A program made the position numbers and the translations under genes. DNA of 64,000 nt from Macrostomum lignano (lineage: Eukaryota), in the NCBI GenBank assembly GCA_002269645.1, contig NIVC01001406.1, forward strand, positions 231,804 to 295,803, given 5' to 3'. This document shows, one piece after another, positions 19,801 to 58,337 of the stretch. Numbering within the stretch: the first letter of the stretch is position 1; each line of letters opens with the position of its first letter. The notes beneath the pieces are model-generated. The model saw only the letters and a program-made list of their open reading frames with translations, had not been told where the DNA came from and ran no database searches.

Positions 19801-19981
19801 CCCAGCCAACAATAGCAATGTTTGCCTCAAATCCTAATTTTACATGAATGTACACTATTTAACTCTAATCCTAACTATTAACAAGTTTTTGTTTGAGTTT
19901 GACCTCAGATTTTAGAATACATGCAAAAAATCCAGGGAATGGAGTTCCCCGGGTTCAAAATCCGCGGGTTTCAACAGCTTG
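16865..19981 (+). mobile_element. Non-autonomous Helitron, copy 2 (most divergent)
   Basis: Same 5' TC terminus and 3' hairpin+CTTG terminus, fused directly CTTG|TC to copies 1 and 3. Confidence 0.8.
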
Positions 19982-21902: not shown

Positions 21903-21970
<68 letters not shown>

Positions 21971-22868: not shown

Positions 22869-23537
22869 TATAGTATATACTACATTGGTTTATACCAACC
22901 TATATGCTATGAGACTTGAAAATTATACACCAAGTATATACTAATGATCAATATGCCCTAGAAATTTTGAATGCATATAACATGATCCTTAGAGTTGAGA
23001 ATGGTTTTTAGTCTATTGCTTATATTAGCATTAGAATCTCTAGAATCTATCTATTAGACCCTTTATACCTTTTGATAAAGTCCACAATGTAGATATGATC
23101 TGACCTCTAGCAAGTGATATAGCACTATATTCCAGATCATTTTGGGTGCATGCCTAAACTAAAATTGAAGAGTTACAAATGTATACCAAAAAAATTTAAT
23201 ATATGCCTTTAATTTAATTTAGGCATGTTGCAACAATAAATGACCCTTTTTGCATTGTATAAAGAATCCTTTTTGGCTACTTATTTATCTATATTATTTA
23301 TAACAAAAAAATGATATGCACAAAATTTTGTTTAAACATATTATTGATAAGCCTAAAAGCCAAAAAGTTTGAAATTTATGCTAAAATATGAATATTTTCA
23401 ATCTTTTTACATGATGCTATGAAGTGCATGCCAGGTATACATGCATACTATTTTCTTAAGAGTTATGCATACCAATTGTGTAGCCTAAATTTAAATGTGC
23501 AAGGCCAATGCACACCTAAATTTTTAGATATATACTA

Positions 23538-32152: not shown

Positions 32153-32817
32153 TGTTTGATATTTAGGTGCGGTTTCAGATCATAACTAAATTGAAGCAAT
32201 CAATGCTGGTCCTCTAGATGTAACCGCTCATATAAAATCTGAAACCAAGACAGAAAATCGTAATGAAAGAACAAAAGCCATTGCCGTCATTCGACTTGCG
32301 TCATCCTTTTATTATTTGTTAGAAAAAAATAACAATAATATTTGTTATCGGCCTAAATGCACAAAGCTTCAACCGGGCATAAAAGACGTAAGCATGAAAA
32401 TGAGATTTTCATTATCCAGTTTGACTGCACACAATTTACTTGTTATATCAAAGAGATGGTAGGTGATTTTGAATGGACACAACACAAAGGAAAAGCTCAG
32501 TTATAGCTGGTAGAGAAACCTTCCTTGAGTCAAACTATAATGTCAGATTGAACTACAATGATAAAAATTGTAAATTGCAAAATAGGATTCGAGCTACAAA
32601 AAGACTTAATAGAATTGGGAAATTCTATCCTTTCGGGCTAGGGGGGGGGAAATAATAAAAAAACTATAGACTATGACAACTGATAGTTTGTCTTCAGTAG
32701 GTTGATGCAACAGACGAACTGTCTGCCGTCTTATAAAAAAACTGTTTGAGAAGAAGCCGCCCGAACAGAGCAGCTTGAGCTTGCTTAGCAGTCAGCGAGG
32801 CTGTCAGCCATTCCCAG

Positions 32818-36100: not shown

Positions 36101-39100
36101 ACGAAGAGGACGTGGCCCGAGTACTGCGAGCCCACTGGGCGGTCACGGAGACCTGTGGCGGTCGGCCCGCCCGACTGGCCCTGCTAGCCAGGAACCACAT
36201 CCGCTGGGCACTAATAGCCAAGAATGGCAACGCCGAAACGTACAAAGACTTGTCGACGAGAATGGCTGAACTGCCGGGGCGTTGGCGACTGTGCCGAATG
36301 GTGGAATTCATGGACGAGGAGTTTCTAGCGCCAGAGATTAGTGCCATACTGAGCCGAGTGACGTCCGATAGTGACCAGTTTGCAGCATGCTTGCCGTGAA
36401 ATAAGCCTTAGTTTACACATTATAGATTTCACTTGCTTCTGACTACTTAATTTAGTCAGATCACTTCCGGACATATGGTCTCGACACTCAAGTCAAAAAT
36501 AATACAATCGGCTTTCTTGTATTTGGAAACAAAACTAACTGCGATTACATTGTCTGTCTGTAACTACCAAACTCAAATTCAAATTTTCCAGTTGATACTT
36601 CCGATCACCCCAGATCAAGTTTTTGTACCAGCCGCGTCTCAGTTTCTACTTAGTCGTTAGATTGCAAAATGCACGCATTTTTGGTATCACAATTTAAATG
36701 GAACCGTCACCTGCTACCATATGAATATGCTTATTCAAAAGCTCTGTTTTGTGATATTCAGTTTTTTCACTGTGTATCACGCGGAATTATTTTGAAGGTC
36801 GATTTTGAGAATCGTGTATACTTTATTAGTTGGAAAACTAATGCACTACATGTATCTTGCTGGGGTGCTTTCTATCGGGGGGGGGGTGCTAGATATCTGG
36901 GGTTGCTTGCTCGGGGGAAATTGCTGAGATGTAAAGGCTTACTGAGGGAATTACTGAGATGTAAAGGCTTACTGGGGGAATTGATAAGATGTCAAGGCTT
37001 GGGGGAATTGCTAAGATATAAAGGCTGAGGTTAGAAGCTACAGGTAGTTTATTTAAAAAAATTATTACATTCTTTGCTTGTTCCCCAACGGGGGCCGTAG
37101 ATTGCTAGTAACTTCCTAGAAACAACCGAATCAAAGTATTGTTTTGAAAAAAACGGCCTTCAAAACGGCACCAGAACAACATTGCCAATTTATTGTGCGT
37201 GCTTGTTGCTTATAAGAGCGCCAATCTAAACGATCCCCTCTTTCTACTTATGCTACGACTCAGAGCAATAGGTTTCTTAGTCATGGACCGTATCTTCAGA
37301 GTTTTTTGTTATAAAAATGTGAAATCTTACATTTAAAGTTCTCTGCAGATGAAAACCACTGTCAAAGTGTGTAAGTGGTTCGAGAAAATCTTTACCCAGT
37401 TACCATGGAAACTTAACCGAATAAGTATTTTGTTGAAAACTGAGAAACTCTATTTTGCGAGATTTGATTGCTTTGAGACAATATTTGCTTGAAGCACCGT
37501 TTGCAAAGCAGCAAAGGGAGTATGGGAGGGCAAGATCTTCAAAATGCATTTTATCCCGGTTGCCTTCGACAGCTAGCGAACAAAATATTGGAGCTCAATA
37601 TTTCTAATCACAAAGTACTTCGGTGTCAAAAGCAAGATATTCAAGCATAATGGCTGCAGCTTCGTTTCGTTCTGTCTCTCCGAAATATTCAGACAAGTCG
37701 GACCTTGATGGATCGGGTCCTGCATCAGGGGTGCTAGTTGAGCAAGCAAGACAGGACAGCCGATGTATGCTAAAGTTTGACTCCGGATAATTTTCCAAGC
37801 CAAATAGCTCTTAAATAGCTCATCAGCTCATCTGGGGGGGAAGCGCTTTCTATCATAAACCCGAAATATCATAGACCCGAAATATCATAGACTCGAAATA
37901 TCATAGACCCGAAATATCACAAACACAAAATATCATAACTCCGAAAACCAAAATAGTGTTGGACATTGCTAGAACTTTCTAGTGATATTTCGGGTTTATG
38001 ATGGGCGCTGCTATTAATTTCGGAGTTGTGAATTTTCGGGTTAATGATATTTCGGGTTTGTGATATTTCGGGTTTATGATATTTCGGATTTATGATCGGG
38101 TTTATGATGCGAAGTGCTTTCGGAGTTGTGATTTTTCGGGTTTATGATATTTCGGGTTTGTGATATTTCGGGTTTATGATATTTCGGGTTTATCATAGGG
38201 TTTGTGATATTTCGGGTTTATCATCGGGTTTATGATGGGAATTGCTTTCGGAGTTGTGATTTTTCGGGTTTATGATATTTCGGGTTTGTGATATTTCCGG
38301 TTTATGATATTTCCGGTTTATGATAGGCGTTGCTATTAATTTCAGAGTTGTGATTTTTAGGGTTTATGATGGGCGTTGCTATTAATTTCGGAGTTGTGAT
38401 TTTTCGAGTTTATGATATTTCGGGTTTGTGATATTTCGGGTTTATGATATTTCGGATTTATGATCGGGTTTATGATGCGAAGTGCTTTCGGAGTTGTGAT
38501 TTTTCGGGTTTTGATGGCGACCCGCTCATCTCTATCAGACGCCCAGAGCTTGAGAGCTTGAATCAAGAATAATGATTCAATACCTTCAATACAAAGTCAG
38601 AATCCCCTTAGCAAAGCAGTTAAGCGTTGCTCAACTCAAGCTCAGCGGTACACCCTGTGTGTGAGCGTGTGTCAGCGTATATATCCGTCCGCATGCTCAG
38701 GCCAGCGGGATGAGCACTATATGCCTGGCTTGATTTGCGGCAGTGCATGAAGCCTCACTGCAGACAGACAGTCGCACTCGTTTTTAATAAAATATGACAC
38801 TGCAAAGTTCAAAGTCGACTTTACACTTCTTCAAGTGATCAGGTGGCGAGTGTAGTTTCGTCACGAGAATCCGATGGAAAGAAGATTATCGGAAGGATCG
38901 GACTCTATCCAGGCATTCGCCAGTCGCCAGTCGGCAACGCGTTAATCCGGACAGACACGCTGAAACTTGATCTACTCAAAACTGATTTTTTTGTAGACTA
39001 GCAATGCGACGTCCATAGCTCTGCTTTTGCAGGAAAAAAAACTTTTTAGCTTTTAACATCACACAGAGAGCAGCGCAGGGCTCACGTCAGCTGTCATAAT

Positions 39101-42100
39101 CATATCCGAATCTGGTTGCTCTAATGTCCATTTTGAAGACTTTTGATTTTGCAAAAATCGATATTCAGCAACAGATAAATCCCCCTCTCCAAAGCTGACG
39201 CTGTCACGCGGCACAAAAGTGCAAGCAATGCTTTTAATATCGTTTGTTTCAGTATCGTGTGTAGGAATCACGAGCATGCAAAAGCAGGCATTCAGAAGCA
39301 CCAATCGCAACTGTTCAGCATTCTGCGGGGCAACCACGCTGAACTCTTCGCTTTACGAAGTCGAATCAAGACATGCTTGGTGGGGGTTCATGTCTGGAGA
39401 CTTTGACGGCCTGTTTAAATGTGCGAATTGCTCTGCGCAACCCCCATCCCCTCCATGGTTTCCTTATGCCGCATGCTGCGATGGCATCTAGCGGTGGCAG
39501 CGATTCGCACATTTCTGAATCACCGATGACATGCAGAAATTTTGAGACGTGGCAGTGCAAGTTATGGGGGTTAGCTGTTGCTGGGTAGATTCTTCTTATG
39601 CAAGCCTGAAGAGTCAGCGAAGGGGAAGAGACTGGTTCGCTGCCATCTAAGGAATGCCGCTTATTGCTAGCGAAAAGGGCGTTAACCGCGCAACACAAAG
39701 GGAATCCTAGGTAATTCTAGCTAAATCAGTGCACGCGGACATGAAGTCAAATCATGTTTTAGCCGGCCAGTACGAGCACTTGTGCTGCTTGATTTCTTAG
39801 AATTGAAGTGCGCTTCGGGTAAACAATTGTCTGGAGTCTAATACGGTTGATAATATTAATTCACTAGTTTTAACTGCAATTTTCTAGAGCAACTAGATTA
39901 TTATGCCGGTATAAACGCTCGTACAGTAGGTGATTTATGATTGTTTTACATAGGGAAACTAGCCGGGAACCGAACAGGCCAAACTTCTAAGCTGTTTTCG
40001 ATCTTAAAGGATTTCCTTCTGGCATGGGAGCGGTACGTCTGCCTAAGCCTGCCTAAACTATTGGAAATGCGACTTAACTCAAATCTGCTCTAGTCCTAAA
40101 AGAAAAAATCTTTTAAGTGGCTAAGGAGAAAGGAACAAGACAGATTAGCCCTGACTCTCATTGAGATGTCCAGTCTCATGGAGGGTATTGCTGAGATTTC
40201 AAGGTTCATGGAGGGAATTGCTGAGATTTCCAGTCTCATGGAGGGAATTGCTGAGATATCAAGGTTCATGGAGGGTATTGCTGAGATTTCAAGGTTCATG
40301 GAGGGAATTGCTGAGATTTCCAGTCTCATGGAGGGAATTGCTGAGATATCAAGGTTCATGGAGGGTATTGCTGAGATTTCAAGGTTCATGGAGGGAATTG
40401 CTGAGATTTCCAGTCTCATGGAGGGAATTGCTGAGATATCAAGGTTCATGGAGGGTATTGCTGAGATTTCCAGTCTCATGGAGGGAATTGCTGAGATTTC
40501 AAGGTTCATGGAGGGAATTGCTGAGATTTCCAGTCTCATGGAGGGTATTGCTGAGATTTCCAGTCTCATGGAGGGAATTGCTGAGATTTCAAGGTTCATG
40601 GAGGGAATTGCTGAGATTTCCAGTCTCATGGAGGGTATTGCTGAGATTTCCAGTCTCATGGAGGGAATTGCTGAGATATCAAGGTTCATGGAGGGTATTG
40701 CTGAGATTTCCAGTCTCATGGAGGGAATTGCTGAGATTTCCAGTCTCATGGAGGGAATTGCTGAGATATCAAGGTTCATGGAGGGTATTGCTGAGATTTC
40801 AAGGTTCATGGAGGGAATTGCTGAGATTTCCAGTCTCATGGAGGGAATTGCTGAGATATCAAGGTTCATGGAGGGTATTGCTGAGATTTCCAGTCTCATG
40901 GAGGGAATTGCTGAGATTTCAAGGTTCATGGAGGGAATTGCTGAGATTTCCAGTCTCATGGAGGGTATTGCTGAGATTTCAAGGTTCATGGAGGGAATTG
41001 CTGAGATTTCCAGTCTCATGGAGGGAATTGCTGAGATGTCAAGGCTCATGGAGGGTATTGCTTAGATTTCAAGGTTCATGGAGGGAATTGCTGAGATTTC
41101 CAGTCTCATGGAGGGAATTGCTGAGATGTCAAGGCTCATAGGGGGATGCCGATATATTAGGCTAGATTGCTGGCTTTCAAGGCGGATGCTGTCTAATAAA
41201 GAAATGAACAATAGAGACAGCAAAAAATGTCAAAGATCATCAAAGCTTGAATGCAGTTCATTCTGAAAAATGTATCTTCCTTTGTATTTGTAGCCTCCCC
41301 AAACTGGCTGCGCAGATTTCTAGTAAATACTAACAGTAGGTGCGATTGCCTATCATAATTTGTTCTTCTGAGAAAATTAGGAACTTTGTGTGTGTGCCCG
41401 CCTTTTTAATTTTAACTAAACCTAGAAAATTCCAGAAGTTGATAACAATAATAATAATTGATAATAATTAATTACACCTGCCCTAATAGGCAGATGTGCA
41501 ACCAACAGCTCAGCCAGAGCTATTGCGCGGCGCATCTGGCACCCATTTTACAACTGGGCGAACTGAAGCAATGCAGAGTTAAGTGTCTTATTCAAGGACA
41601 CACATCGCTCCAATGGTATTGGGAATCGAACCCCCGACCTTCAAGTCGCGAGTCCGACGCTCTAACCCCTAGGCTACAGCCCCCTTCTGCGCAGCGGATA
41701 ATATAGCAAAAACGAACTCACCAGCTGCGCCAGCACTACAATAAGCGCCACCTGCCGCATCAGAGTGCTCTTGCCGCCCATATTCGGCCCGGTAACTAGC
41801 ACAAACGGGGCGCCACTGGGATCGTCCGATCCGGCCGGCTTACCAAGCGACGTATCGTTCGGGATGTAGCCGCCAGCGCTGAATGTGCGCGACACGAATG
41901 GGTGCCGGCCCTGACGTATGGTCAGGAAAGGCTGCGCGGAGAGATATAGAAAAGGTACATGTAAGTACACAGTAAGTGCATTAGCGAACTACACTTAACT
42001 ACACACCCTCCAGAGTCCAACAATGGGCCGCCGCTACCCTCCAGAGTCCAACAATGGGCCGCCGCTACCCTCCAGAGTCCAACAATGGGCCGCCGCTACC

Positions 42101-45100: not shown

Positions 45101-48100
45101 CCCCTTGGGTAATTTCCATTGGGGATTCCCCATCGGATAATTTTTATTGGGGATTTCCCCTCGGGTTATTTCTACTTGGGAATTCCTCTCAAGGTTATTT
45201 CTATTGGGGCATTCCCGTTGGGTTATTTCTATTGGGGAATTCCCCTCGGGTAATTTACATTGGGGATTTCCCCTTGGGTAATTTCCATTGGGGATTTCCC
45301 CTTGGGTAATTTCCATTGGGGATTCCCCATCGGATAATTTTTATTGGGGATTTCCCCTCGGGTTATTTCTACTTGGGAATTCCCCTCAAGGTTATTTCTA
45401 TTGGGGCATTCCCGTTGGGTTATTTCTATTGGGGAATTCCCCTCGGGTAATTTACATTAAGGATTTCCCCTTGGGTAATTTCCATTGGGGATTCCCCATC
45501 GGATAATTTTTATTGGGGATTTCCCCTCGGGTTATTTCTATTTGGGAATTCCCCTCAGGTTATTTCTATTGGGGAATTCCCCGGTTTCCCAGGTGCTTGC
45601 ATTAGGAGGCATTGCCTTCGTGTTTTCTAGATAGATAGGGTCTTTTCATAGTGAGTGGTTAAGCTACTGAAACACTGAAGACGATCGACCCAAGCGAGGC
45701 TTCAAAGACTCACTCGAACAGTTTCCTTTCAGCCAGGCCAGCCATCAGCCGGCAGGCGGCTTCAAAGCCGGCCAACAGTCCCAGGAAGTCTTCAATCTTG
45801 CGCTTATTGTATTGCACAGCTTCGAACAGCACAGCCCGCTGATCCGGATGGTCCGTGCCGGCAGGCCGGCAGCCGAACACGTGCATCTTAGCCGTCAGCT
45901 TCTCTAAATCTGGCAGCTTCTTCAGGCCGGCTGATAATTCCTGGCAGACTTGTCGATCGGCCGACACCAGTTCAGCGACGGCCTCCTGGCGGCGTTGGAT
46001 CGCTTCCGGATGGCAGAGCGGAGCGCACAGCCACTGCTGCAGCAGCCGCTTGCCGAAGGCCGTGCCGCAGCGGTCCAGCCGGCTGTACAGGGTGGCCTCA
46101 GATGACCCGCCGCCTCCTCTCTGCTGCTCAGCGAAGACATCCAGATTGGCCAGCGCGATGCCGTCAAGCACAGCGTGAGTCTGGCTGGCGTAGAATGGCG
46201 GCGCATCAGCTGCCTTCATCTCGGCCTCATCAGCGCCAGCCTCATCGGCAGCTGAGCCGGAGTCTGCCGGCCTGTAGACGGCGAAGTTGCGCATAGACAG
46301 CACGTCGTGATCGATGAGGCAGCGGCTCAGGTAGTGCACCAGGCCGCCAAGGGCGCTCACTCCGAGCTCCCACTGTCTGGCCGCAGTCCGGCCAAGGCTG
46401 TCCGACTCGCATAGCAACGGTTGCAGACCCTCGGGCCAGGCGAACTTGCCGTTATCAACAAAGTAAGGCGCCTCGGCCAGGTGTGCCAGGCACCGGCCGC
46501 TGTCCCAGAACTCGCGGCCGGGCGTCAGCGCCTCTTTCGGCACGGCGCGGAGGCAGCCGTTCAGGATGGCCAGAGTGGCCGGGCGGAGTCGGCCGCGCTC
46601 GTGCAGCAGCTGGGCAGGCGGATGGTGCGCTATGAGGGTGCGCAGCCGGGAGCAGTGGCAGTCGTCGGCGAACTGTCCCACCTGCGCCAATGGGGTTGGC
46701 AAAATTTTTTTTGTACTTTGTTAGTGCAATTCCAGTGCGTTCCTTGACGTCCTTGAAGCACGATTTGAAGTAGGATCCTAAAAACAGTTTTTGTCTGCCA
46801 CTAACAAACTAGGGGTTGTAGCCCAGTGCTTAGAGCGTTTTACTCACTAGTCACGACTTGAAGGTCCGGGGTTCGATTCCCGATCCTACTGGAACAATTT
46901 GTATCCTTGAGCAAGACACTTTAACTCTGCATTGCTTCAGTTCACCCAGCTGTAAAATGGGTGCCAGCATTAGCTGGGGTAATTGAGGGTGTGTGTGGTG
47001 ACCCCCCCAGTCCTTGGACTGAACACCCGTACGCAGCCTTCAGATGCGCCGCGCAATAGCTGCGGCTGAGCTGTCGGTTGCACATCTGCTCATTGTGTCA
47101 ATTATTATTATCTGCCACGATAGTTTAATCCATAAAACTAGACTGCTTTCATATTTATTAATATAGCATTTTCTAAGCATATCGAGCCTAGGAGCAAGCA
47201 AATTAGTTTAGTTAATGAGTGAATTTAGCTATTGAAGACTTGTTTCTCATTGTCTATGGCCTAAAGGGGGGTCTGTGAAGCAGCCATAGATACTATAAAC
47301 ATTAGCTAACTCTAAGAGGCTATGAGGCTAAGATGTTGTCTATGGCCAAGAGCTATAGAAATAGCTTATCGCAAAATCATAACGTAAAGATTGAACTCGA
47401 ACTTTTGGGGTTAGCGAACTGGGCGGCAACGCCTCCTCGCTGTTTCCGGACGCACGGAGCCCCCTGCAGCTAAGTCAAGTAAGTGTTCAATAGAAAAATT
47501 GAAAAAAGGTCAAGTAAAACACAAACATATTACTCACCCAAACTTGACCAATAGTAGTATCGACAAATGCGACGCCAAATTGCAGCGAAACCTGCTGTTG
47601 CGTTGAGTCAGAATCCGCCGACCCGGCGTTACATTGAACAGCCTCCTTCACAGCTAGAAGGTACTGCGCCTTAGTTACCAGGGCGTCACCGTCCCAGTGC
47701 GAGGCCAGGCGGGTGCCAGGCGTAGTCACGCGACAGATTTCGCGGCGCATCACCTGGCAGAGCGATTGGAAAGTTTTAACCATCGTTATAATAAACTCCA
47801 GTGCCTGAGTTGACAACCCTACTCCCCAGTGCCTGAGTTGAGAACCCTACTCCCCATTTCCTGAGTTGAGAACCCTACTCCCCATTGCCTGAGTTGAGAA
47901 CCCTACTCCCCAGTGCCAGAGTTGAGAACCCTACTCCCTAGTGCCTGAGTTGAGAACTCTACTCCCCAGTACCTGAGTTGAGAACCCTACTCCCCATTGC
48001 CTGAGTTGAGTACCCTACTTCCCATTGCCTGAGTTGAGTACCCTACTCCCCAGTGCCTGAGTTGAGTACCCTACTCCCCAGTGCCTGAGTTGAGTACCCT

Positions 48101-51063
48101 ACTCCCCAGTGCCTGAGTTGAGTACCCTACTCCCCATTGCCTGAGTTGAGAACCCTACTCCCCATTGCCTGAGTTGAGAACCCTACTCCCCAGTGCCTGA
48201 GTTGAGTACCCTACTCCCCAGTGCCTGAGTTGAGTACCCTACTCCCCATTGCCTGAGTTGAGTACCCTACTCCCCATTGCCTGAGTTGAGTACCCTACTC
48301 CCTATTGCCTGAGTTGAGTACCCTACTCCCCATTGCCTGAGTTGAGTACCCTACTCCCCAGTGCCTGAGTTGAGTACCCTACTCCCCATTGCCTGAGTTG
48401 AGAACCCTACTCCCCAGTGCCTGAGTTGAGTACCCTACTCCCCAGTGCCTGAGTTGAGTACCCTATCCCAGTGCCAGAGTTGAATTCCCAACTACAGTGC
48501 CTGAGTTGCATAGCCTCCTTCCCCAGTGCTTGTCTGCCTCAGGCCATCTACGCAAACCATAAAAAAATTACCTTCTCCTTTCCCGGCCTGCCTCGCGTCC
48601 TCTCCTGCATCTGATCGGGCGTCTCAGTCTGCTCAACCCTGGCTACTTTGTAGCCTTTCTGCACCAGCGAATCGGCCATGCGACCAAATGAGACCTCAGG
48701 AAAGCCGGAATGAGCGTAAGCGCCGCGCATGTAGGACAAATTGAGCTCCTGCACGCCAAGCACCGCGTCCATATGGTAGAGCTCATAGAATTTGCCAACT
48801 TTAAAGAATAGCACCGTGTCGAAATGGCGCGACTTCAGTTCCCACCACTGACGCATGGCCGGAGTCAACTGTGGGTAATAGATGAAAATTTGTGAAATAT
48901 AAATGAGTAGTATAATGATGATTGACTATAAACAGCTTTTATAGTTAATTTAGCTGTATATATACTACTTACTACAAATATTAAATCCAAGAAATTAGAT
49001 ACTGTATTGAGGGTTTCAATTATAAATTAATATTTAATTGATTACACCTGTCCCAATGGGCAGATGTGCAACCGACAGCTCAGCCGCAGCTATTGCGCGG
49101 CGCATCTGAAGGCTGCGTACGGCTGTTCAGTCCAAGGACTGGGGGTCGCCACACACCCTCAGTTACCCCAGCTAATGCTGGCACCCATTTTACAGCTGGG
49201 TGAACTGAAGCAATGCAGAGTGAAGTGTCTTGCTCAAGGACACAAATTGTTCCGAGTGGGCCGAGAATCGAACCCCCGACCTTTTAGTCGTGAGTCCGAC
49301 GCTCTTACCAACAGGCTACAAGCCTTTTAACCCCTTTAGGGACCTAAGATACTTCAAGAATCGTTTAACTGTGAATAAAGTGTTTCTGTAGACTCTACTA
49401 CAATTTATAAGCCTGTTTTTGCTGGCCATCGAAGGAAGAAAGTCCCATTTTTAAGGTAAAGAAAGAAAACATTATTTAGTTTTAAATCATACAAGTTCTA
49501 CTCCTAGCCAGAAGCTCCTGGCCCAGAAGGCCCAGGAGGCCCTGGCCTCCTACCTAGAAGCTCTACTACCCTGAAGCTCTACTACCCTGAAGCTCTACTA
49601 CCCTGAAGCTCTACTACCCTGAAGCTCTACTACCCTAAAGCTCTACTACCCTGAAGCTCTACTACCCTGAAGCTTTACTACCCTGAAGCTCTACTACCCT
49701 GAAGCTCTACTACCCTGAAGCTCTACTACCCTGAAGCTTTACTACCCTGAATCTCTACTACTCTGAAGCTTTACTACCCTGAAGCTCTACTACTCTGAAG
49801 CTCTACTACCCTGAAGCTCTACTACCCTGAAGCTCTACTGCCCTGAAGCTCTACTACCCTGAAGCTCTACTACCCTGAAGCTCTACTACTCTGAAGCTTT
49901 ACTACCCAGAAGCTCCAATACCCTGAAGTTCTACAACCTCGGCTTTTAAGCTGTATTCATCCTGTAAGCTCTACTTCAACACCGGCAACAACAACAGCCG
50001 GCTGACCTACCTGAGTATAATACCTCTCCGGCACTAGCAGGGTTCGGCCGTCATATTCAGGATTGTCCGGCCGCCGGCCAGCCGAATCTCGGATCCGCTC
50101 GGGCCGCAACCAGTCCAGCTTGAGGTGATCCCAGATCTGCTGCTGGCCGCCGCCCAGCTGCACATCGTCATCGTCGGCGGCACCAGCCGAGGCAAGCGTT
50201 GACCGATCCAGTGCCGACGCTGAGAAGCTGGCCTCGCCATCGGATGAGGCAACAGACGCCGGGCTGAAAGCTGCCAGCCTGCTCAGACCGCTGCCCGGCT
50301 TGCGGGCTGGCGTAGTCTTCGTTGTTGAAGCAATCGACGTGTCGGCAAGTGTTGTAGGATTTTTCTGCTTTTTCTTGTCGGCTGCGGCAAGTTTGCGACG
50401 CCTGGATGGCGGGCTGACATTCTCCAGGTCGCTGCCAGAATCGGCACTGCTGTCGGCTGAATCTTCTTCTGAAGCATCGTCTTCTTCTTCTTCTGCAGAT
50501 TCCTCAGACGATGAAGTCCCACTTTTTCCTGGAGAGTAGTCTGTAATGTAGCAGTAGTAAGCGCATTGAATTAATTGACAAATAGCAACATTTAGGATTA
50601 TTTCTAGAAAATATCACTTTAGCTACTTTTCAAATGTAGCAATAAATTTTAAGCAGACCCGCTAAATTAGACTGTCTTAGACTCGGAATTATCTATCAGT
50701 ATCAAAAGAGACAGTTTCTGTAGTAAAACTAGGAAAAATCGTGTGCAAAAGCCAAGGAGGTTGCCAGCCAAGAAAATGTGCGGCAAGAAAGGTACCAGCT
50801 CAGGACAGAATTTCGGCAGCTGTCTAATTTTACATTTAAAATCAATTAATGAGCTAAATAAAGTATACTAATACACTTATTTATTCGGTTAGGCTGCATA
50901 AAGATTTGTATTTAAAAAACTTTTACCAACTGACTCGCAATCAGCGCCCCCCGTTTGATTTTTTTAATAAACTACATGTAGCTTCTCTTTGCAATAACCT
51001 CAGCAATCCGTCTGTCTGTCTGTCTGTCTGTCTGTCTTTCTGTCTTTCTTGTCTGTCTGTCTG

Positions 51064-51129
<66 letters not shown>

Positions 51130-51176
51130 GTGTCTTAGTGTCTGTCTGTCTGTCTGTCTCTGTCTGTCTGTCTGTG

Positions 51177-51211
<35 letters not shown>

Positions 51212-51212
51212 G

Positions 51213-51243
<31 letters not shown>

Positions 51244-51244
51244 G

Positions 51245-51291
<47 letters not shown>

Positions 51292-51292
51292 G

Positions 51293-51325
<33 letters not shown>

Positions 51326-51328
51326 TAG

Positions 51329-51405
<77 letters not shown>

Positions 51406-51442
51406 TAGTGTCTGTCTGTCTGTCTGTCCGTCTGTCTATCTA

Positions 51443-51473
<31 letters not shown>

Positions 51474-51476
51474 TAG

Positions 51477-51545
<69 letters not shown>

Positions 51546-51548
51546 TAG

Positions 51549-51645
<97 letters not shown>

Positions 51646-51682
51646 TAGTGTCTGTCTGTCTGTCTGTCCGTCTGTCTATCTA

Positions 51683-51737
<55 letters not shown>

Positions 51738-51740
51738 TAG

Positions 51741-51785
<45 letters not shown>

Positions 51786-51788
51786 TAG

Positions 51789-51835
<47 letters not shown>

Positions 51836-54552
51836 GATTTTTTTTCAAGAACCGTCCGGTCGATTTTTTTTCACATTAACTTAAAAAATTGTAATTCTTC
51901 GGCAATCATGCATAACTTTTTTGATGAAAAATTTGAATTGGAAGTGGGTCAAATATTTGAAAAAGTGTCAGTGAGGTGAGGTCACCGAACCTTCAAATTT
52001 AGATCGTATTTAGTGCTTTGAGAAGATTTTTGTGTAGAAGACCAGCTTCTCAAATGTTTACTAAAATTACTTGTCTTCAGAACCGAAAGAAGAGTTTAAA
52101 TTTAAAGTTTACTTTAAAACATAATGCCCAATGCATACTAGCAAAGAATGGTATTTTCAATGAAAAAGGTCGCTGCTTAGAGTTTTGCGAGTGTGAGAAA
52201 ACTGTGGCAATTTGGCAAAGTGGCAGTTCATGAGACTGATAAAATCGAGAAGCACTTGGCTATGTCAAGCTGACTACCTCTGATTGAAATAGATTTACTA
52301 ACCTTCCTAAGGCAAATGACAGCTCTGACAGGGCGTGGGCGGCGCGGCAGGGCGAGACCGCGTCACCTGCAGCGGCACCAGCGACACCATAAATGAGAGC
52401 CCAGCGACCGAGCCCCGAGACCCAATCAGCAACTCAACCCAGCAGCCAGTCTCAAGAAGCCAGCAGCCAAAGCACCCAGCTCAGCAGCCATGTACAAGCT
52501 CGTCTGTCTGTTCGCTCTCGTGGCCTTCGCCGCCGCCGCCTACACTCCGGAGCAGAAGAACGAGGTCGTGAACGACATCATTCACGAGGTCGTTCCCGTG
52601 CTCAGCATCGACACAAACTGCCTGCAGCAGAACGGCATCAGCTCCGTGACGTGCCTGGTGAGCAACCTGATCACCTGCTTCTTCTCCAGCGGCACCAACA
52701 TCAGCAAGCTGGCCACCTGCCTGGCCAGCAAGTGCGGCGGCAGCGCCATCCAGATCATCAGCTGCATCAAGCTGTAAATGCTGGATAGCTGCTTTATTTC
52801 AGATAGATTCCAAATACACTTGGCTGAGATGCAACTAGAGATGTAATGTCTACATGTGTTTAACAAGCTTTATCAATTTAATTCTTATTTCTGAAGCTAC
52901 AACTCAGGATAAGGGAGGATAAAGAGCAAGCAGATCTCTTTATGCCAACGGTTTAATCGCACAGGGCTAATAAACGCACCCTCCCCAAAAACTGGAGGTG
53001 GTTAAGACAAACCCACCTCAAACCGGCACACCGCCAACCAATCGCAGCCAAGCGCCCCACTTTTGCCTCCACCCTAAGAAAGAAAGATTCCCTATACGCT
53101 ATTTAAACCATCGTTTCCTCAATTCGAACTAACCCGAATCCATATCCGACTCAGCCTTCGGTTCTTCATCGTCGTCCGATTCAATAACAGCCTCGCGGCG
53201 CTTCTTTCTAGCTGGTAGTTTCGATGCAAGACCGGAATTCGCGTCCTAAATGGAATTTTATTAATAAATGCAATTAAAATATCAGCAATGTTGCTTTTAT
53301 ATTACTCGTCACAACAAAGTAAGTAGTATGGAATGCTAATTCTAACATTCAAGAACAATAAAAATATAAACGTTGTGCTCCAACGCGTTCTTTATTATGG
53401 ACGAAATTTACTGTAATGGCCTACATGACAAATGGCACTCTTCTTGCCTTAAATGGACATTTACACACGAACGCACTCACACAGGGTGTAAAAGCGGCCC
53501 TAGCTTTTTGGTAGTACTCTGAAGTACTCGAAGTTTGTAGTACTTACGTAATATATGGTAATATTAAATATGCAAAATTGATCTAAACAAAGAAATGAAA
53601 GAAATACATTTCGGTACTGTATAAACTACTAAAAGTAGCTTGCTAAAATACTTACTGGCGATTCCTCTCTGCCCCGTTTGCGAACAGTTGACACCGCCTC
53701 ATCCGCATCATCGTCAATGCTAGTCCCATTCGGTCCGGCATTATCCTCCTCGCCACACGATGGCTCCTGCTGGGCCAGCAGTTTGTCTAATCTGTCGGAC
53801 CGGCTAAGAGGCTGAGCATCCAGCGCCATCTTATAAGCGGCAGCAAGTTTTGGATCCTCCGGTTCCATAGACTCTCCGCAGGACATCATGCTGCGGGCCT
53901 ATGCGGTCGCGTGATCCAGGGGCGGGGATCAAATCGAATGAACTGGTGCTTTATAGATAGATAAATTATGTTGGCTTGGAATCCATAAAGCTACTTGAAA
54001 TCAGTAGTATTATCTAGCATTTTATTGCTCCCAGCTGTGAGTTGGGGTCACTTCTCTACCCCGCCTCTCATTTTATTGCTACCAGCTGTGAGTTGGGGTC
54101 ACTTCTCTACCCCGCCTCTCATTTTATTGCTACCAGCTGTGAGTTGGGGTCACTTCTCTACTCCACTACCCCACCCTCATTTTATTGCCCCCTGTTAATT
54201 GGGGTCACTTCTCAACCCACCCCTTATTTTATTGCCCCCTGTTAATTGGGGTCACTTCTCAACCCACCCCTTATTTTATTGCCCCCTGTTAATTGGTGTC
54301 ACTTCTCAACCCACCCCTTATTTTATTGCCCCCTGTTAATTGGTGTCACTTCTCAACCCCACCCCTTATTTTATTGCCCCCTGTTAATTGGGGTCACTTC
54401 TCAACCCCACCCCTTATTTTATTGCCACCTGTTAATTGGGGTCACTTCTCAACCCCACCCCTTATTTTATTGCCCCCTGTTAATTGGGGTCACTTCTCAA
54501 CCCCACCCCTTATTTTATTGTCCTTTTGCTCGCTGACCATACATGGTGCTTT

Positions 54553-54603
<51 letters not shown>

Positions 54604-55118
54604 AAATAACTGAGGTAAACCATGCATCTACTATTTAATACCTGTTCGCAATTGCCGCCAGCTAAGTCAGTCCAGAGCTGCACACAGTCGGCCGGCACCC
54701 AGGACCGGTTGGGCGGACTGTCCAAAAATTGCACGTGCACCCGGCCGGGCCGATCCGGCCGACGATTGGCTTCAAAAGTCCGGCGCCGGGTCGGATGCCG
54801 GCAGACTAGAGCGGGCCACCACGGATATGGGTCCAGCCTGGCCCAGACTAAGTCGCCTTCAGCCGGCCTGCCCGGCACTTGCTGCTGCTTATCAGTCTTA
54901 TCCTTCCGTTTCGGCGTCTTTGAAATCGATTTCTGCTTTTTAGCGGAAGAAGCAGACTGAGCAGAAGCAGAAGCAAACTTCAAACTTTTCGGCGTCTTTG
55001 CTGCGCCTGCTGGCGAAGACGAAGCGCCAGCTGACGGCGACGCGGCGGGCCAGGGCAGCTTCTTTGCCTGGCCGCTGTTCTGCGGCGAGAAGAACTGCAG
55101 AATAGACTTCTGCGACAT
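32818..55118 (-). CDS. MSH6: DNA mismatch repair protein MSH6 (MutS-alpha subunit), 14 exons, ~1418 aa
   Basis: Exons (minus): 54642-55118, 53656-53898, 53134-53245, 50011-50540, 48572-48868, 47538-47753, 45714-46681, 44471-44747, 43443-43633, 43161-43296, 41722-41931, 33920-34007, 33257-33510, 32818-33075. All have GT-AG boundaries and compatible phases, total 4257 nt. Motifs: N-terminal PIP box QKSILQFF; PWWP ([12 protein letters not shown]); MutS domain [16 protein letters not shown]; Walker [11 protein letters not shown]; Walker B/signature [13 protein letters not shown]; STHYH; C-terminal [13 protein letters not shown]. Confidence 0.97.
33081..33161. repeat. (TAG)27 microsatellite at the last MSH6 acceptor
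   Basis: Perfect trinucleotide run ending a few nt before the AG of exon 14 on the minus strand. Confidence 0.95.
33590..33873 (-). mobile_element. tRNA-derived SINE, copy in MSH6 intron 12
   Basis: The reverse complement begins with a tRNA-like head (A box TAGTCTAGTCGTTAG, B box GGTTCGATTC), then the core GTGTCCTTGAGC.AGACACTT and a (TTA)n tail; shared with five other copies. Confidence 0.85.
35065..36399 (+). CDS. Ankyrin-like repeat / C-terminal SOCS-box-like protein (ASB-like), nested antisense in MSH6 intron 11; probable intron 35515-35595
   Basis: Long GC-rich ORF starting MGQRYSS. Degenerate ankyrin-like segments ([29 protein letters not shown]) and a BC-box-like [16 protein letters not shown] followed by ...[14 protein letters not shown]. 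An AT-rich 81-nt GTAAGA...CCAG segment looks like an intron; spliced product ~417 aa. The family call is inference from motifs. Confidence 0.7.
   Translation: MGQRYSSFTGSLPHYTRLSQTSTLAMLHDAIVEGDSEVANQLIDALRVDGGARTFGAKRRKKARRQQQREQQQLYLDYRGETRFGIEIRYSQTALALAIQFGQWDTFKDLILCGLSPRAQQRMLVPGHNGQSSTRDFENALDLFVWALTKVRFVKMIHQILKEFLTAKFELSIRPNQASYYPPYLSEEQVIELTWVILRHGVSPDSLPGQLLHRVCQAAVLDLIGSSLLDMETSTVLQRSALSILCCLLQHGMNLNDGAICNLQPLYHLVLCYLANPAASLAQQLRSNSKLRLALCIIINAACNSNTGLPSVTAAGLTNRSWRSTASLWYNYAKMHGQQRKTMLVDEEDVARVLRAHWAVTETCGGRPARLALLARNHIRWALIAKNGNAETYKDLSTRMAELPGRWRLCRMVEFMDEEFLAPEISAILSRVTSDSDQFAACLP
36913..37027. repeat. Short degenerate ~30-bp tandem repeat
   Basis: About 4 copies of GGGAATTGCTGAGATGTAAAGGCT-like units, sharing their core with the 40161 array. 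Confidence 0.7.
37855..38515. repeat. Degenerate ~15-bp repeat with an internal orientation switch
   Basis: CCCGAAATATCAT units at 37855-37950, then the reverse-complement units ATGATATTTCGGGTTT at ~37983-38515. Confidence 0.85.
40161..41140. repeat. 30-bp minisatellite
   Basis: Unit ATGGAGGG(A/T)ATTGCTGAGAT(T/A)TC(CAGTCTC/AAGGTTC), ~33 copies. Confidence 0.97.
41465..41683 (-). mobile_element. tRNA-derived SINE, internally deleted copy
   Basis: Same head, core and tail as the other copies, lacking ~70 bp of the middle. Confidence 0.8.
42003..42720. repeat. 31-bp minisatellite in MSH6 intron 10
   Basis: Unit CCCTCCAGAGTCCAACAATGGGCCGCCGCTA, ~23 copies. Confidence 0.97.
43922..44376. mobile_element. 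Foldback MITE in MSH6 intron 8
   Basis: TA|CACTACGGAGAT ... ATCTCCGTAGTG|TA termini with ~190-bp imperfect inverted arms. Confidence 0.8.
44885..45585. repeat. ~26-27-bp minisatellite filling MSH6 intron 7
   Basis: GGGGATTTCCCCTCGGGTAATTTCTATT-type units containing mini-palindromes GGGGA(A/T)TTCCCC; a ~200-bp higher-order block is duplicated (see matching ORFs at 45091 and 45288). Confidence 0.92.
46812..47110 (+). mobile_element. tRNA-derived SINE, copy in MSH6 intron 6
   Basis: GGGGTTGTAGCCCAGTG head, GGTTCGATTCCC B box, conserved core, TTATTATTA tail. Confidence 0.85.
47800..48530. repeat. 28-bp minisatellite filling MSH6 intron 5
   Basis: Unit CCCCAGTGCCTGAGTTGAGTACCCTACT, ~25 copies. 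Confidence 0.97.
49038..49324 (-). mobile_element. tRNA-derived SINE, copy in MSH6 intron 4
   Basis: Near-identical to the 33590 copy, with CpGs intact. Confidence 0.85.
49555..49930. repeat. 16-bp minisatellite in MSH6 intron 4
   Basis: Unit GAAGCTCTACTACCCT, ~23 copies. Confidence 0.95.
51010..51834. repeat. ~820-bp (TCTG)n microsatellite with periodic TTAGTG interruptions
   Basis: Directly visible; the flanks resemble microsatellite-carrying non-autonomous rolling-circle elements. Confidence 0.97.
52335..52430 (+). promoter_or_regulatory. Putative Pol II core promoter of the secreted peptide gene
   Basis: GC box (GGGCGG, ~52338), TATA-like CATAAAT (~52389) and initiator-like ATCAGCA ~30 nt downstream (~52424), followed by a 5' UTR leading to the ATG at 52490. 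Confidence 0.5.
52490..52777 (+). CDS. Small secreted cysteine-rich protein, 95 aa, intronless, nested antisense in MSH6 intron 3
   Basis: Signal peptide [17 protein letters not shown]; six mature Cys spaced C-x10-C-x7-C-x13-C-x4-C-x9-C; strong C/G third-position codon bias; TATA-like and initiator-like elements upstream; AATAAA near 52969. Confidence 0.85.
   Translation: MYKLVCLFALVAFAAAAYTPEQKNEVVNDIIHEVVPVLSIDTNCLQQNGISSVTCLVSNLITCFFSSGTNISKLATCLASKCGGSAIQIISCIKL
54020..54603. repeat. 47-48-bp minisatellite plus a (CA)n(GA)n compound microsatellite in MSH6 intron 1
   Basis: Unit TTTTATTGCCCCCTGTTAATTGGGGTCACTTCTCAACCCCACCCCTTA, ~10 copies, then (CA)n(GA)n at ~54555-54603. Confidence 0.93.
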
Positions 55119-55259
55119 CTCTGGCTTCTGCTGAGCCTTTTTGCTTGTTCACCTGGGTCAATTTTTCTTATAACACCCTATAGAATTACAGCAACGTGCA
55201 GCACAACCAGCTGAAATATTTTGCTTTATGCATCAGTTTCTAGGCAACGGCTGAAATTT

Positions 55260-56215
55260 CAGAATCTTCCCTAATTCCCATTGAGAATCTTCTAATTACC
55301 ATTCGAGAGTTTTCTTAAATTCTTCTTTAATAATCTTCCCTAAGTACCCTTTGTAAATCTTCCGTAATTTTTCTTTAATAATATTTCCCTATTCCTCTTT
55401 AAGAATCTTCTCAAATTTCCCTGAAAATCTTCCCCAATTCCCTATATGAGAATCTTCCCAATTCCCCTTTGAGAATCGTCCCATTTCCCCTTTGAGAATA
55501 TTCCCCAATTCCCCATTTGAGAATCTTCCCGATTCCCCATTTGAGAATCTTCCCCAATTCCCCATATGAGAATCTTCCCGATTCCCTATTTGAGAATCTT
55601 CCCGATTCCCCTTTTGAGAATCTTCCCGATTCCTCTTTTGAGAATTTTCCCGATTCCCCTTTTGAGAAGCTTCCCCAATTCCCCTTTTGAGAAGCTTCCC
55701 CAATTCCCCATCTGAGAATCTTCCCCGGTTCCCCTTTTGAGAATCTTCCCGAATCCCCTTTTTGAGAATCTTCCCCAATTCCCCATTTAAGAAGCTTCCC
55801 CAATTCCCCATTTGAGAATCTTCCCGATTCCCCTTTAAGAATCTTCCCCAATTCCCCTTTTGAGAATCTTCCCCAAATTCCCCATTCGAGAATCTTTCCG
55901 ATTCCCCTTTCGGAATAGCTGATCAACCCCAATTCCCCATTTGAGAATCGTCCCGATTCCCCCTTTTGAGAATCTTCCTCAAATTCCCCATTTGAGAAGC
56001 TTCACCTTTTCCCATTTGAGAATCTTTCCCATTCTCATTTGAGAATCTTTCCCATTCTCATTTGAGAATCTTCCCTAACTTCCCCTTGAGAATCTTCCCA
56101 ATTCCTCTTTGAGAATCTTCCTCAATTCCCCATTTGAGAATCTTTAGCTTTTTTCCATTTGAGAATTTTCCCTAATTTTCTTTTTGGGAATCTTCTCAAT
56201 TTCCCATTTGAGAAT
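55260..56215. repeat. Degenerate ~24-bp minisatellite between the UFM1 3' end and MSH6 start
   Basis: TTGAGAATCTTCCC(C)AATTCCCC(A/T)T-type units, ~40 copies. Confidence 0.92.
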
Positions 56216-56891: not shown

Positions 56892-58337
56892 TCAAAGTCC
56901 AACTTGACCAACACGATCGCGCGGAATCAGGCGCAGCTCGGAGCCGTACTTGAGAAACACTTCGCCAGCGGTTTGCTGAGGATTAATTCCCACGCCGTCA
57001 TTAGTGATGATAGCGCTGGTGGCCGGCGGCACTTTGAACTCTTCGGCTGAGAATTTTAGCACGGCAGTGAATGGAGTGGCCTCCGGCACGCTAAGCCTGG
57101 TTCGAATGGCACAAATGGCAGTGTCAATCCAGTACTGCTATGTATACTGCTGACCCCTATGTTTAAAAATCCATATCAGTAACTGATTAATTTTCCATAA
57201 CTTCCTATAATTCACTTCCAGTAAGTCATCAACTTCACAGGCTCTTTTAACTGGCTGGGACTACATTTATGTTAACTTTAGACTCCATTATCTCAACTAC
57301 AACATGCAAATGTTGCTTGAGTAGCCAACCCTACTCAAGCCAACCCTACGCTAGGTGCTGAGAACTGAAGAGTTCCCCTCAAAAAAGCTTTGAAACTGGC
57401 AGCATGCATTCATTTCTACTAAGTCATTAAATTCTTAGCTATTGAGTTACCAATATTAATAGATACAAAAAATAGACGTACAACCTCTAGCCTAGTGGTT
57501 AGTTTTAGACTCACTCACGACTGAAAAGTCGGGGGTTCGATTCTTGACCTACTTGGAACAATTTGTGTCTTTGAGCAAGACACTTCACTCTGCATTGCTT
57601 CAGTTCGCCTAGCTGTTAAATGGGTGCCAGCATTAGCTGGGGTAATTGAGGATGTGTTGGCGACCCCCCCCCCCACCCCCAGTCCTTGGACTGAACAACC
57701 ATACACAGCCTTCAGATGCACTGCACAAAGGCATTAAAACTTTTAAAATGTGCATTCAATGTTTATGAGTTTTGAAAGATTTATCATTGAAAGCCATATT
57801 GAAATATTCTTTCTCTTCTCAAGGGGGCTGTAGCCTAGCAGTCTAATGCAGCATTCTGATATGCCAGTAGCCCAGGCTCAATTAAAAGTGCAGTCACATT
57901 AATTTGTGGCTAATATTGAAATCACAGCTTGGGTCTGTAACCTGAGTTTTTTTTGTCCATAACTTGGGTGCGATTTCGCACCCTGTGCTATATTTCAGGA
58001 TGCGATTTTCAAGACCAGGATGCGCTGCATTGCTGCAGACAAAAACTGGTGTATTCTAAGAACACGAAGTTACAGACTTAAGACGTCCATAACACTAAAT
58101 TGTGAAATCCACATCACATCCTTGCAAAAAATTCTGGTGCACTTTTTGCACGCTGAGTCAAATTTCAGGGTGCGATTTTCAAGACCAGGATGCTATTCGC
58201 ACCCATTTGCACAAAAAAACCCAGTCTGTAACCCTTATTCCATCTCCGATTTCAATATTAAAAACTTGAAAAACTTACACTTTGTATGGCAGCTTTGGGT
58301 CTGAAGTCAGTGTGATCTTAAATGTCACCTTTGACAT
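56892..58337 (-). CDS. UFM1: Ubiquitin-fold modifier 1 precursor, 2 coding exons, 87 aa
   Basis: Exon 58279-58337 gives [19 protein letters not shown](V) with a GTAAGT donor. Exon 56892-57096 gives [67 protein letters not shown]. Phase-2 intron; near-identical to metazoan UFM1. Confidence 0.97.
57484..57725 (+). mobile_element. tRNA-derived SINE, copy in the UFM1 intron
   Basis: Head TAGCCTAGTGGTTAG...GGTTCGATTC and the same core; 3' truncated. Confidence 0.8.
57942..58224. mobile_element. MITE with 8-bp TSD in the UFM1 intron
   Basis: TIRs CTG(A/G)GTTTTTTT(T)GT; direct repeat TCTGTAAC at 57934-57941 and 58225-58232; internal direct repeat GCGATTTTCAAGACCAGGATGC. Confidence 0.75.

Follow-up and report, generated by a model that had tools for sequence, protein, structure and literature searches.

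A six-cysteine secreted-protein gene of a Macrostomum-restricted family, nested antisense in an MSH6 intron of Macrostomum lignano

Lineage-restricted families of cysteine-rich secreted proteins are common in invertebrate genomes. Saposin-like proteins (SAPLIPs), to which saposins A-D, NK-lysin/granulysin, surfactant protein B and pore-formers of protozoa and nematodes belong, are secreted or lumenal domains of ~80 amino acids (aa) with five helices in an all-alpha structure, three disulfides, a hydrophobic composition and a lipid-interacting character. Cestode hydrophobic-ligand-binding proteins (antigen B) are flatworm-restricted, tandemly clustered, abundant, secreted alpha-helical lipid-binding subunits of ~8 kDa. 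In cone-snail and other venom peptide superfamilies as well as in many invertebrate antimicrobial peptide families a conserved signal or pro region goes along with a hypervariable mature part framed by cysteines. Here we describe a gene for a six-cysteine protein on the plus strand of a 64,000-nucleotide (nt) stretch of Macrostomum lignano DNA (contig NIVC01001406.1, positions 231,804 to 295,803; referred to as the window), where it lies inside intron 3 of an MSH6 gene on the opposite strand. We found that it is an intact, conserved, intronless gene encoding a secreted protein, and that it belongs to a family which is transcribed, restricted to the genus and tandemly amplified.

With SAPLIPs the window protein shares size, a predicted all-alpha structure of five helices, three predicted disulfides and hydrophobicity, but its cysteines follow the framework C-x10-C-x7-C-x13-C-x4-C-x9-C instead of the CxxC...C-x~10-C...C-x5-C of saposins, and no similarity was detected by Pfam, profile-profile or Foldseek comparison. 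Antigen B offers an analogy as a lineage-restricted, clustered multigene family with a helical secreted product of ~8 kDa. It lacks the six-cysteine framework, however, and a search of 1.84 billion representative proteins with the profile of the Macrostomum family gave no match outside Macrostomum. The resemblance to venom and antimicrobial peptide families is one of pattern only, with a nearly frozen signal and N-terminal part, an invariant cysteine scaffold, replacements concentrated between the cysteines and tandem amplification: the Macrostomum mature protein is larger, helical and acidic and has no dibasic processing site.

The gene and its family in Macrostomum

An earlier note on this DNA, made from the letters alone, had described an intronless 95-aa open reading frame (ORF) with a signal peptide and six cysteines. 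On recount the spacing of the six post-signal cysteines was identical to the one given there (x10, x7, x13, x4, x9). In the precursor they are residues 44, 55, 63, 77, 82 and 92; a further cysteine, Cys6, lies within the signal peptide. The N-terminus is built like a signal peptide, with an n-region of charge +1 (one Lys), a hydrophobic core of 14 residues and Ala-Ala-Ala before Tyr18, Ala thus occupying positions -3 and -1. Both the signal peptide and its cleavage site were called by reading the sequence by eye. The positions of all features are given in Table 1.

The same note had taken the gene for an orphan, which did not hold. It is a dispersed copy of a multi-copy family already deposited in NCBI and UniProt under the name 'hypothetical protein' (Mlig001791, Mlig013012, Mlig018888 and others); the scaffold matches nothing curated, yet the family itself is in the databases. 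Among 5.8 billion proteins five clusters were 75–87% identical in aa sequence over the full 95 residues (E=2.6e-47 to 1.4e-35), all of them from M. lignano or from a Logan sample. The close relatives are BOX15_Mlig001791 (g1, g4), Mlig013012 (g1, g2) and Mlig018888 (g1), and the signal peptide as well as the AYTPEQ start are common to these paralogues and the window protein. In the exhaustive profile search of the 1.84 billion representatives we found four divergent M. lignano groups (Mlig029556, A0A1I8HA56, Mlig019425/Mlig026862 and a fused gene model) and one spurious match. Distant family members are ~40–47% identical to the window protein in aa sequence. The exact 95-aa protein of the window has no record in the databases searched.

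A search of the host genome for paralogues, as the earlier note had suggested, gave at least 13 intact copies on four contigs of the DV1 assembly, in tandem arrays that include copies in both orientations. Contigs 671 (~15 kb of DNA examined) and 3085 (~18.6 kb) each carry 4–5 intact copies and a truncated copy; contig 4760 carries three intact copies, a disrupted one and the truncated copy, and contig 1252 has one solitary copy. Most of the other copies form tandem arrays beside FANCL and amine-oxidase genes. The window copy is solitary in MSH6 intron 3, and no paralogue was found elsewhere in the 64 kb.

Homology between the window and all these copies is confined to positions 52317–52781, with a nt identity of 91–92%, and the flanks are unrelated. 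With two copies (L006, 1580–2010, and truncated copies) it extends to 52825. The conserved unit therefore begins at 52317, upstream of the start at 52335 that had been given for the gene in the earlier note. In comparison with the Mlig001791, Mlig013012 and Mlig018888 genes, promoter and 5' untranslated region (5'UTR) are alike at the same 91–92% nt identity. Around the duplicated unit we detected neither a target-site duplication nor a poly(A) remnant, and the intron sequence does not recur in the window. Since the duplication included the promoter, a retrocopy is unlikely; the window gene is a dispersed DNA-level duplicate of a member of the tandem cluster.

Across 12 family members the six cysteines and P36, D41, G49, A75, G83, A86 and K94 are invariant, and the window protein has every one of these residues. 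The framework of the family is x10, x7, x10–13, x4, x9. Length differences among intact copies are in frame: one copy has an additional Ala, and in one subfamily loop 3 is shorter by 2–3 residues. The database model P0005 is short of eight residues, although all 95 are encoded at its genomic locus. Two contigs of a second Macrostomum species (L003/L004) carry an orthologue with a synonymous divergence (dS) of ~0.4. The window copy also shares the architecture of the family, being intronless and having the promoter blocks, a TATA-like box and an AATACA-type hexamer after the stop codon.

The promoter blocks are conserved over the same range of copies. The distal block TGACAGCTCTGACAGGGCGTGGGCGGCG, which contains the GCGTGGGCG box, is kept in L003/L004 as well; its motifs may be sites for EGR-like and other transcription factors, an assignment made from motif likeness. 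In the block GCGTCACCTGCAG the core GCGTCACCTGC is invariant in six of six aligned copies, including the otherwise divergent promoter of copy c4 (P0004), and it reads GCGTCAGCTGCAG in L003/L004. A TATA-type promoter of the gene's own had been proposed in the earlier note, and the TATA-like box is indeed conserved in the copies c1–c3 and in L003/L004. Judged from this conservation, the nested gene has a conserved promoter of its own.

Transcription of the window copy probably starts at ~52422–52424, because the transcript-based partial model Mlig001791g1 (P0001) has its 5' end at the equivalent of 52424, 30–35 nt past the TATA-like box. An out-of-frame upstream ATG at 52393 falls inside this box; with a start of transcription past 52393 it would be untranscribed and MYKL would be the true start of the protein. 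The 30 nt preceding the ATG of MYKL are conserved in all aligned copies. Several NCBI models of paralogues, with lengths of 127, 119, 117 and 115 aa (L001 5022–5405; equivalents in L002, L005, L006 and L007), start upstream of MYKL. In contrast to the 127-aa models, the ATG in the TATA-like box of the window copy is out of frame. The 127-aa models starting at the upstream ATG appear over-extended at their 5' end, and up to 32 spurious residues probably precede MYKL in the paralogue models, hiding the signal peptide.

At the 3' end the canonical AATAAA reported previously exists and lies 160 nt from MSH6 exon 3, but a better candidate for the poly(A) signal is found closer to the stop codon. 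In nearly all copies and in L003/L004 a hexamer CAAATACAC or AAATA(A/C)A is located 25–55 nt past the stop. Because conservation ends at ~52825 and the AATAAA at 52969 sits in non-conserved DNA, the conserved AATACA at 52813 is more likely to be the signal, and the AATAAA would at best be a distal alternative. We think that the mRNA ends near 52830 and has a length of ~400 nt. Some 300 nt past the gene, the end of one of the second-species contigs, L003 (~1100–1179), contains a motif like a tRNA T-arm, GGTTCGAATCC.

Table 1. Positions in the window of the nested gene, its putative control elements and the first coding exons of MSH6
Feature	Position	Strand	Description and basis
Conserved distal promoter block TGACAGCTCTGACAGGGCGTGGGCGGCG	52317-52344	+	two TGACAG motifs and GC/EGR-like GCGTGGGCG box; 5' limit of paralogue homology
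Conserved promoter block GCGTCACCTGCAG	52360-52372	+	contains E-box CACCTG
TATA-like box ATAAAT (context (C)ATAAAT)	52389-52394	+	conserved in copies c1-c3 and L003/L004
Putative 5'UTR	52422-52489	+	start site probably ~52422-52424
ORF of the six-cysteine gene	52490-52777	+	95 aa, intronless; ORF listing and translation
Signal peptide, codons 1-17	52490-52540	+	cleavage predicted after Ala17; read from sequence
Mature protein (78 aa, 8.3 kDa) and stop codon	52541-52777	+	Cys-free amphipathic N-terminal helix, then six-Cys helical core (predicted)
Conserved proximal 3'UTR	52778-52825	+	AATACA hexamer 52813-52818, 36 nt past the stop
Canonical AATAAA	52969-52974	+	in DNA common to no paralogue; 160 nt short of MSH6 exon 3, which ends at 53134
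MSH6 coding exon 1	54642-55118	-	splice sites and phase
MSH6 coding exon 2	53656-53898	-	splice sites and phase
MSH6 coding exon 3	53134-53245	-	splice sites and reading frame; phase continuous with exons 2 and 4
MSH6 coding exon 4	50011-50540	-	splice sites and phase

The mature protein and its predicted fold

The mature product comprises 78 aa with a mass of 8.29 kDa, a net charge of -1, a pI of 5.6 and a grand average of hydropathicity (GRAVY) of +0.48. It has one N-x-S sequon, which is not conserved in the family, and the net charge of its relatives ranges from -2 to +2. That the mature region looked helical had been noted from the sequence. AlphaFold2 (AF2), with the mature protein and an alignment of 13 rows as input, likewise gave an all-alpha model of five helices (mean predicted local distance difference test, pLDDT, 81.6; predicted template modelling score, pTM, 0.69). 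In mature numbering the predicted helices span residues 3–17, 25–30, 36–50, 54–65 and 69–73, with a small beta-bridge between 22–23 and 76–77. The N-terminal helix is amphipathic and contains no cysteine. An earlier AF2 run on the full precursor with six sequences had reached a mean pLDDT of 64.5, and Foldseek found nothing with it.

If helices 3 and 4 form an antiparallel hairpin, Cys38 would lie opposite Cys65 and Cys46 opposite Cys60 (mature numbering), which leaves Cys27 and Cys75 to close the ends. The disulfides are therefore predicted to be nested as 1–6, 2–5 and 3–4, corresponding to Cys44-Cys92, Cys55-Cys82 and Cys63-Cys77 of the precursor.

Neither the fold nor the sequence pointed to a described family. 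Foldseek searches of PDB and BFVD with both models returned no match at E≤0.001; the top PDB match had E=2.8, and TM-scores did not exceed 0.40, so that the combination of AlphaFold and Foldseek proposed in the earlier note yielded a usable model with no significant match. In a sequence-profile search of the PDB the best match was SecB at E=0.23, which is noise. Likewise, Pfam gave only noise at E≤10 for the window protein and for all 12 family members searched.

Expression, divergence and possible function

Gene models of M. lignano were derived from a genome-guided assembly of RNA sequencing (RNA-seq) data (PMC5730564). Because the Mlig_3_7 models of the family were assembled in this way from RNA-seq, the family is transcribed. 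The same study designed a codon-optimised GFP on the basis of the 100 M. lignano transcripts of highest abundance (PMC5730564), and we took the codon used in this GFP as the preferred codon for each amino acid. By this measure 78 of the 94 informative codons of the six-cysteine ORF (83%) are preferred, compared to 41–63% in the MSH6 exons, the UBE2T gene and another nested gene of the window. The GC content at third codon positions (GC3) is 0.93–0.94 versus 0.59–0.76 in these genes, and the GC content of the window as a whole is 0.43. The strong GC3 bias had been observed before and read as a sign of high expression, with which the preferred codons agree: since 83% optimal codons are what is expected of a highly expressed gene, the window gene is probably highly expressed.

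Pairwise ratios of nonsynonymous to synonymous divergence (dN/dS, omega) were calculated by the method of Nei and Gojobori. In codons 1–40, covering the signal peptide and the N-terminal helix, we counted 0–3 synonymous differences within M. lignano, with omega values of 0.2–0.9. In codons 41–95 omega is 0.6–3.2 between subtypes, with the cysteine scaffold invariant. Secreted effector families typically combine a conserved leader with a diversifying, cysteine-framed mature part, and in this respect the sequence pattern resembles theirs.

These observations can be joined into the following account. The gene, a functional-looking member of the family, was copied at the DNA level from a tandem cluster and now lies antisense in MSH6 intron 3, as a compact unit of conserved TATA-like promoter, ~70-nt 5'UTR, 288-nt coding sequence and short 3'UTR. 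It would be transcribed from its own promoter, independently of MSH6, and its near-optimal codons would favour efficient translation. The product would enter the endoplasmic reticulum by means of the 17-residue signal peptide and be secreted as an 8.3-kDa, mildly acidic, unusually hydrophobic protein; the model points to a five-helix bundle with three disulfides. Cys55-Cys82 and Cys63-Cys77 would staple an alpha-hairpin core, Cys44-Cys92 would link the C-terminus with the short second helix, and the amphipathic N-terminal helix would stay free of disulfides. Outside the cell the protein may act as an abundant effector whose hydrophobic faces bind lipids or membranes, in defence or in the processing of microbial or algal prey, in a saposin-like manner on a different scaffold, and the paralogues may diversify on the surfaces between the cysteines.

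Taken as a whole, from membership in the Macrostomum family through the secreted three-disulfide five-helix protein to the lipid or membrane effector, we consider this the best explanation and give it an even chance of being right. Its last step, an extracellular effector interacting with lipids or membranes in defence or food processing, is a tentative proposal drawn by analogy. The evidence bearing on lipid or membrane binding is the hydrophobic and amphipathic composition (GRAVY +0.48, amphipathic helices).

Several points weigh against the account. A net charge of -1 is at odds with a classical cationic antimicrobial peptide. The family has no homologue of known function and its predicted fold matches nothing solved, and the functional step may thus be argued by analogy only. 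The predicted disulfide connectivity follows from helix geometry and not from coordinates. Transcript support comes from models at the level of the family and is not specific to the window copy, whose exact product is not on record, and no tissue expression data for the family were found in the literature or in the supplements of M. lignano expression studies. A full-text literature search with six family gene IDs gave no match, and searches combining Macrostomum with saposin, antimicrobial peptide or cell atlas returned nothing relevant and no literature on the family. As to the divergence, codons 41–95 of the window copy and L001_c1 differ by 20 nonsynonymous and 2 synonymous changes, which by a rough binomial estimate is not significantly above a ratio of 1 (P ~0.09), nor is any other single comparison significant. 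A dN/dS of ~1 also fits relaxed constraint, and the ratio is inflated because strong codon selection lowers dS.

An alternative that keeps the secreted protein and changes its role is a reproductive or other gland-specific secretory protein, e.g. a prostate seminal-fluid protein, that acts on the mating partner and is not a lipid- or membrane-directed defence effector. A family that is genus-restricted, fast-evolving (dN/dS of the mature domain ~1 or above) and tandemly amplified would suit such a role. According to excerpts from two studies, seminal-fluid candidates of M. lignano are small secreted proteins and reproduction-related genes of Macrostomum evolve fast (PMC5977470, PMC7336406). 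However, none of six family gene IDs occurs in the supplements of the seminal-fluid screen and of the three-species positional RNA-seq, a weak negative as these files mostly use other transcript IDs, and the sequence has no reproduction-specific feature. We therefore regard a reproductive role as unlikely, though worth keeping in view.

The dispersed position of the window copy raises the further question of whether it is active at all. It might be a recently dispersed duplicate that is silent and on its way to becoming a pseudogene, with only the cluster copies being expressed. The exact protein is absent from annotated gene sets, the copy stands alone in the intron of another gene and away from the cluster, its dN/dS against the cluster copies is ~1 or above, and truncated and disrupted copies do exist in the cluster. 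Yet the copy has kept its ORF intact with all family-invariant residues, as well as its promoter blocks, TATA-like box, proximal AATACA and 83% optimal codons; furthermore, annotation easily overlooks nested antisense genes. Silence of the window copy thus seems decidedly unlikely to us, and an expressed, secreted effector remains the preferred reading.

Two paralogues (P0004 and P0011) bear the UniProt/UniRef name 'Saposin B-type domain-containing protein', which would make the family a highly divergent true member of the SAPLIP superfamily. The gross likeness, with a mature domain of ~78 aa, five helices, three disulfides and a hydrophobic composition, speaks for this. As a yardstick we used the human lysosomal saposins A-D. 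None of the 12 family members matches the SapB_1, SapB_2 or Saposin profiles at E≤10, while human saposin C as positive control was found in the same Pfam library at 7.5e-14 and 5.8e-13. Alignment of the family against saposins A-D with hhalign gave a probability of 0.2% over seven aligned columns, and no entry with a saposin fold was among the Foldseek PDB matches, the query being a predicted model of a small helical protein. In addition, the window protein has neither the CxxC nor the C-x5-C of the saposin pattern, and its helix 1, being free of cysteines, cannot be joined by a disulfide to the C-terminus the way it is in saposins. Saposin identity was rejected on the Pfam and hhalign results, the 'Saposin B-type' label was not reproduced, and we hold true SAPLIP ancestry to be very improbable. 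The likeness in size and physics is probably the reason for the PROSITE/UniProt tag on the two paralogues. By analogy it supports the statement that the protein may work like a SAPLIP, not that it is one.

Carrying the preferred reading one step further, the family may represent an undescribed disulfide-locked five-helix fold that arose in Macrostomum, with an alpha-hairpin held by two disulfides, a third one securing the C-terminus and an amphipathic 'lid' helix left free at the N-terminus, and thereby a new class of abundant extracellular lipid- or membrane-active effectors resembling SAPLIPs by convergence and not by ancestry. We regard this as a rather doubtful extension.

Other families were rejected as well. 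For the crustacean hyperglycaemic hormone (CHH) and ion-transport peptide no member gave a Crust_neurohorm match at E≤10, and the spacing differs from that of CHH, which we take to be C-x15-C-x2-C-x12-C-x3-C-x8-C. A classical cationic antimicrobial peptide of the defensin or cysteine-stabilised alpha-beta (CS-alpha-beta) type disagrees with the net charge of -1, the pI of 5.6 and the all-alpha model, and no defensin-type Pfam match was obtained. Insect odorant-binding and chemosensory proteins and carriers of the plant non-specific lipid transfer protein (nsLTP) type had no Pfam match at E≤10 and were not among the Foldseek matches. The remark of the earlier note that the protein fits neither saposins nor defensins nor the CS-alpha-beta motif is thus in line with the profile searches.

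At the locus two further ORFs overlap the gene, one of 131 aa at 52393–52788 (+) and one of 94 aa in antisense at 52582–52866 (-). Both result from the GC3-rich coding of the gene. The 131-aa frame lacks conservation, as an indel of 1 nt puts the window out of register with the paralogues. That the six-cysteine ORF is itself a chance product of GC-rich DNA has practically nothing left to recommend it, since, although 95 codons by themselves are unremarkable in 64 kb and alternative frames are open on either strand, conservation across the paralogues and the second Macrostomum species is frame-specific, with in-frame length differences and invariant cysteines, and the 131-aa frame is not kept among the paralogues, so that the comparative data refute it.

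If the preferred reading is true, the gene encodes a secreted effector that is compact, highly expressed and restricted to the genus, and whose cysteine framework and predicted fold are unlike any curated family or solved structure. M. lignano is amenable to transgenesis and RNA interference, and the function is therefore directly testable; the conserved promoter of ~170 bp could serve as a strong cell-type-specific driver. The locus would also be a clean example of a young gene family that grows by tandem and dispersed DNA duplication, with one copy ending up inside an intron of a gene for DNA repair. In terms of annotation, the seemingly over-long 5' ends of the 127-aa models and the automatic saposin label on the two paralogues are of practical concern. 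The gene has no bearing on long-standing open questions.

The host gene MSH6 and the surrounding window

Reconstruction of the exons on the minus strand places intron 3 of the host gene at 50541–53133, and the six-cysteine ORF lies inside it on the opposite strand, as had been stated in the earlier note. Minus-strand ORFs of the window contain the Pfam domains PWWP (54552–55118), MutS_I (48548–48868), MutS_III (45710–46702) and MutS_V (41674–41970), and on DV1 contig NIVC01000330 (locus L008) the host gene is annotated as a 1415-aa protein with PWWP and MutS_I-V. By this domain content the host gene is an MSH6 homologue. A protein search with one MSH6 exon did not have the M. lignano orthologue among its results.

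Positions 10012–41232 of the window are collinear with NIVC01000330 at 96–99% nt identity, non-coding DNA included. Together with a UBE2T ORF 99% identical to its M. lignano counterpart, this collinearity identifies the window as M. lignano DNA. The window represents another haplotype, homeologue or assembly relative to this locus. About 9 kb of it (13752–22869) are missing from the collinear contig, in which 22869 is joined directly to 13752. This segment is rich in long Ser/Leu-rich low-complexity ORFs and probably reflects an indel, rich in repeats or transposons, that distinguishes haplotypes or homeologues.

A second nested gene in antisense is located in a later MSH6 intron at 35011–36399 (+), with an ORF of 462 codons and a probable ATG at 35065. 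Its DV1 counterpart is a 417-aa gene (L008 4125–5459) without a Pfam match. With the ORFs at 52490–52777 and 35011–36399, MSH6 thus hosts at least two nested genes on the opposite strand in this species.

Repeats are frequent in and around MSH6. A (GTCT)n microsatellite of ~206 units occupies 51010–51835 of intron 3, ~480 bp upstream of the promoter block of the nested gene, and yields long spurious 'SVCL' ORFs. An interspersed repeat of ~300 bp recurs in several MSH6 introns and flanks (33579–33876, 46812–47088, 49035–49324 and 57488–57719), with an identity of 90% to L008 6650–6954 and ~70% to L002 15004–15283. Its translations hold a tRNA-like 'ESNPRP' segment, ARAGORN detected no tRNA in it, and it may be a degenerate short interspersed nuclear element. 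Tandem Repeats Finder detected minisatellites with periods of 16 nt (49557–49938), 48 nt (54168–54520) and 24–25 nt (55256–56215); further ones at 30315–32154 and 40096–41232 are marked by staggered self-matches at steps of ~43 nt and ~30 nt.

A UBE2T-like single-exon ORF at 29168–29812 (-) is 99% identical to M. lignano Mlig007030g2; an exact-sequence look-up of the window ORF found no record. This UBE2T homologue adjoins MSH6 in the window, and in DV1 a gene with a FANCL_C domain (L006 14355–15014, -) adjoins the tandem cluster of six-cysteine genes. UBE2T and FANCL are the Fanconi-anaemia ubiquitylation pair. One member of this pair is found near the solitary copy and the other near the cluster, probably by coincidence.

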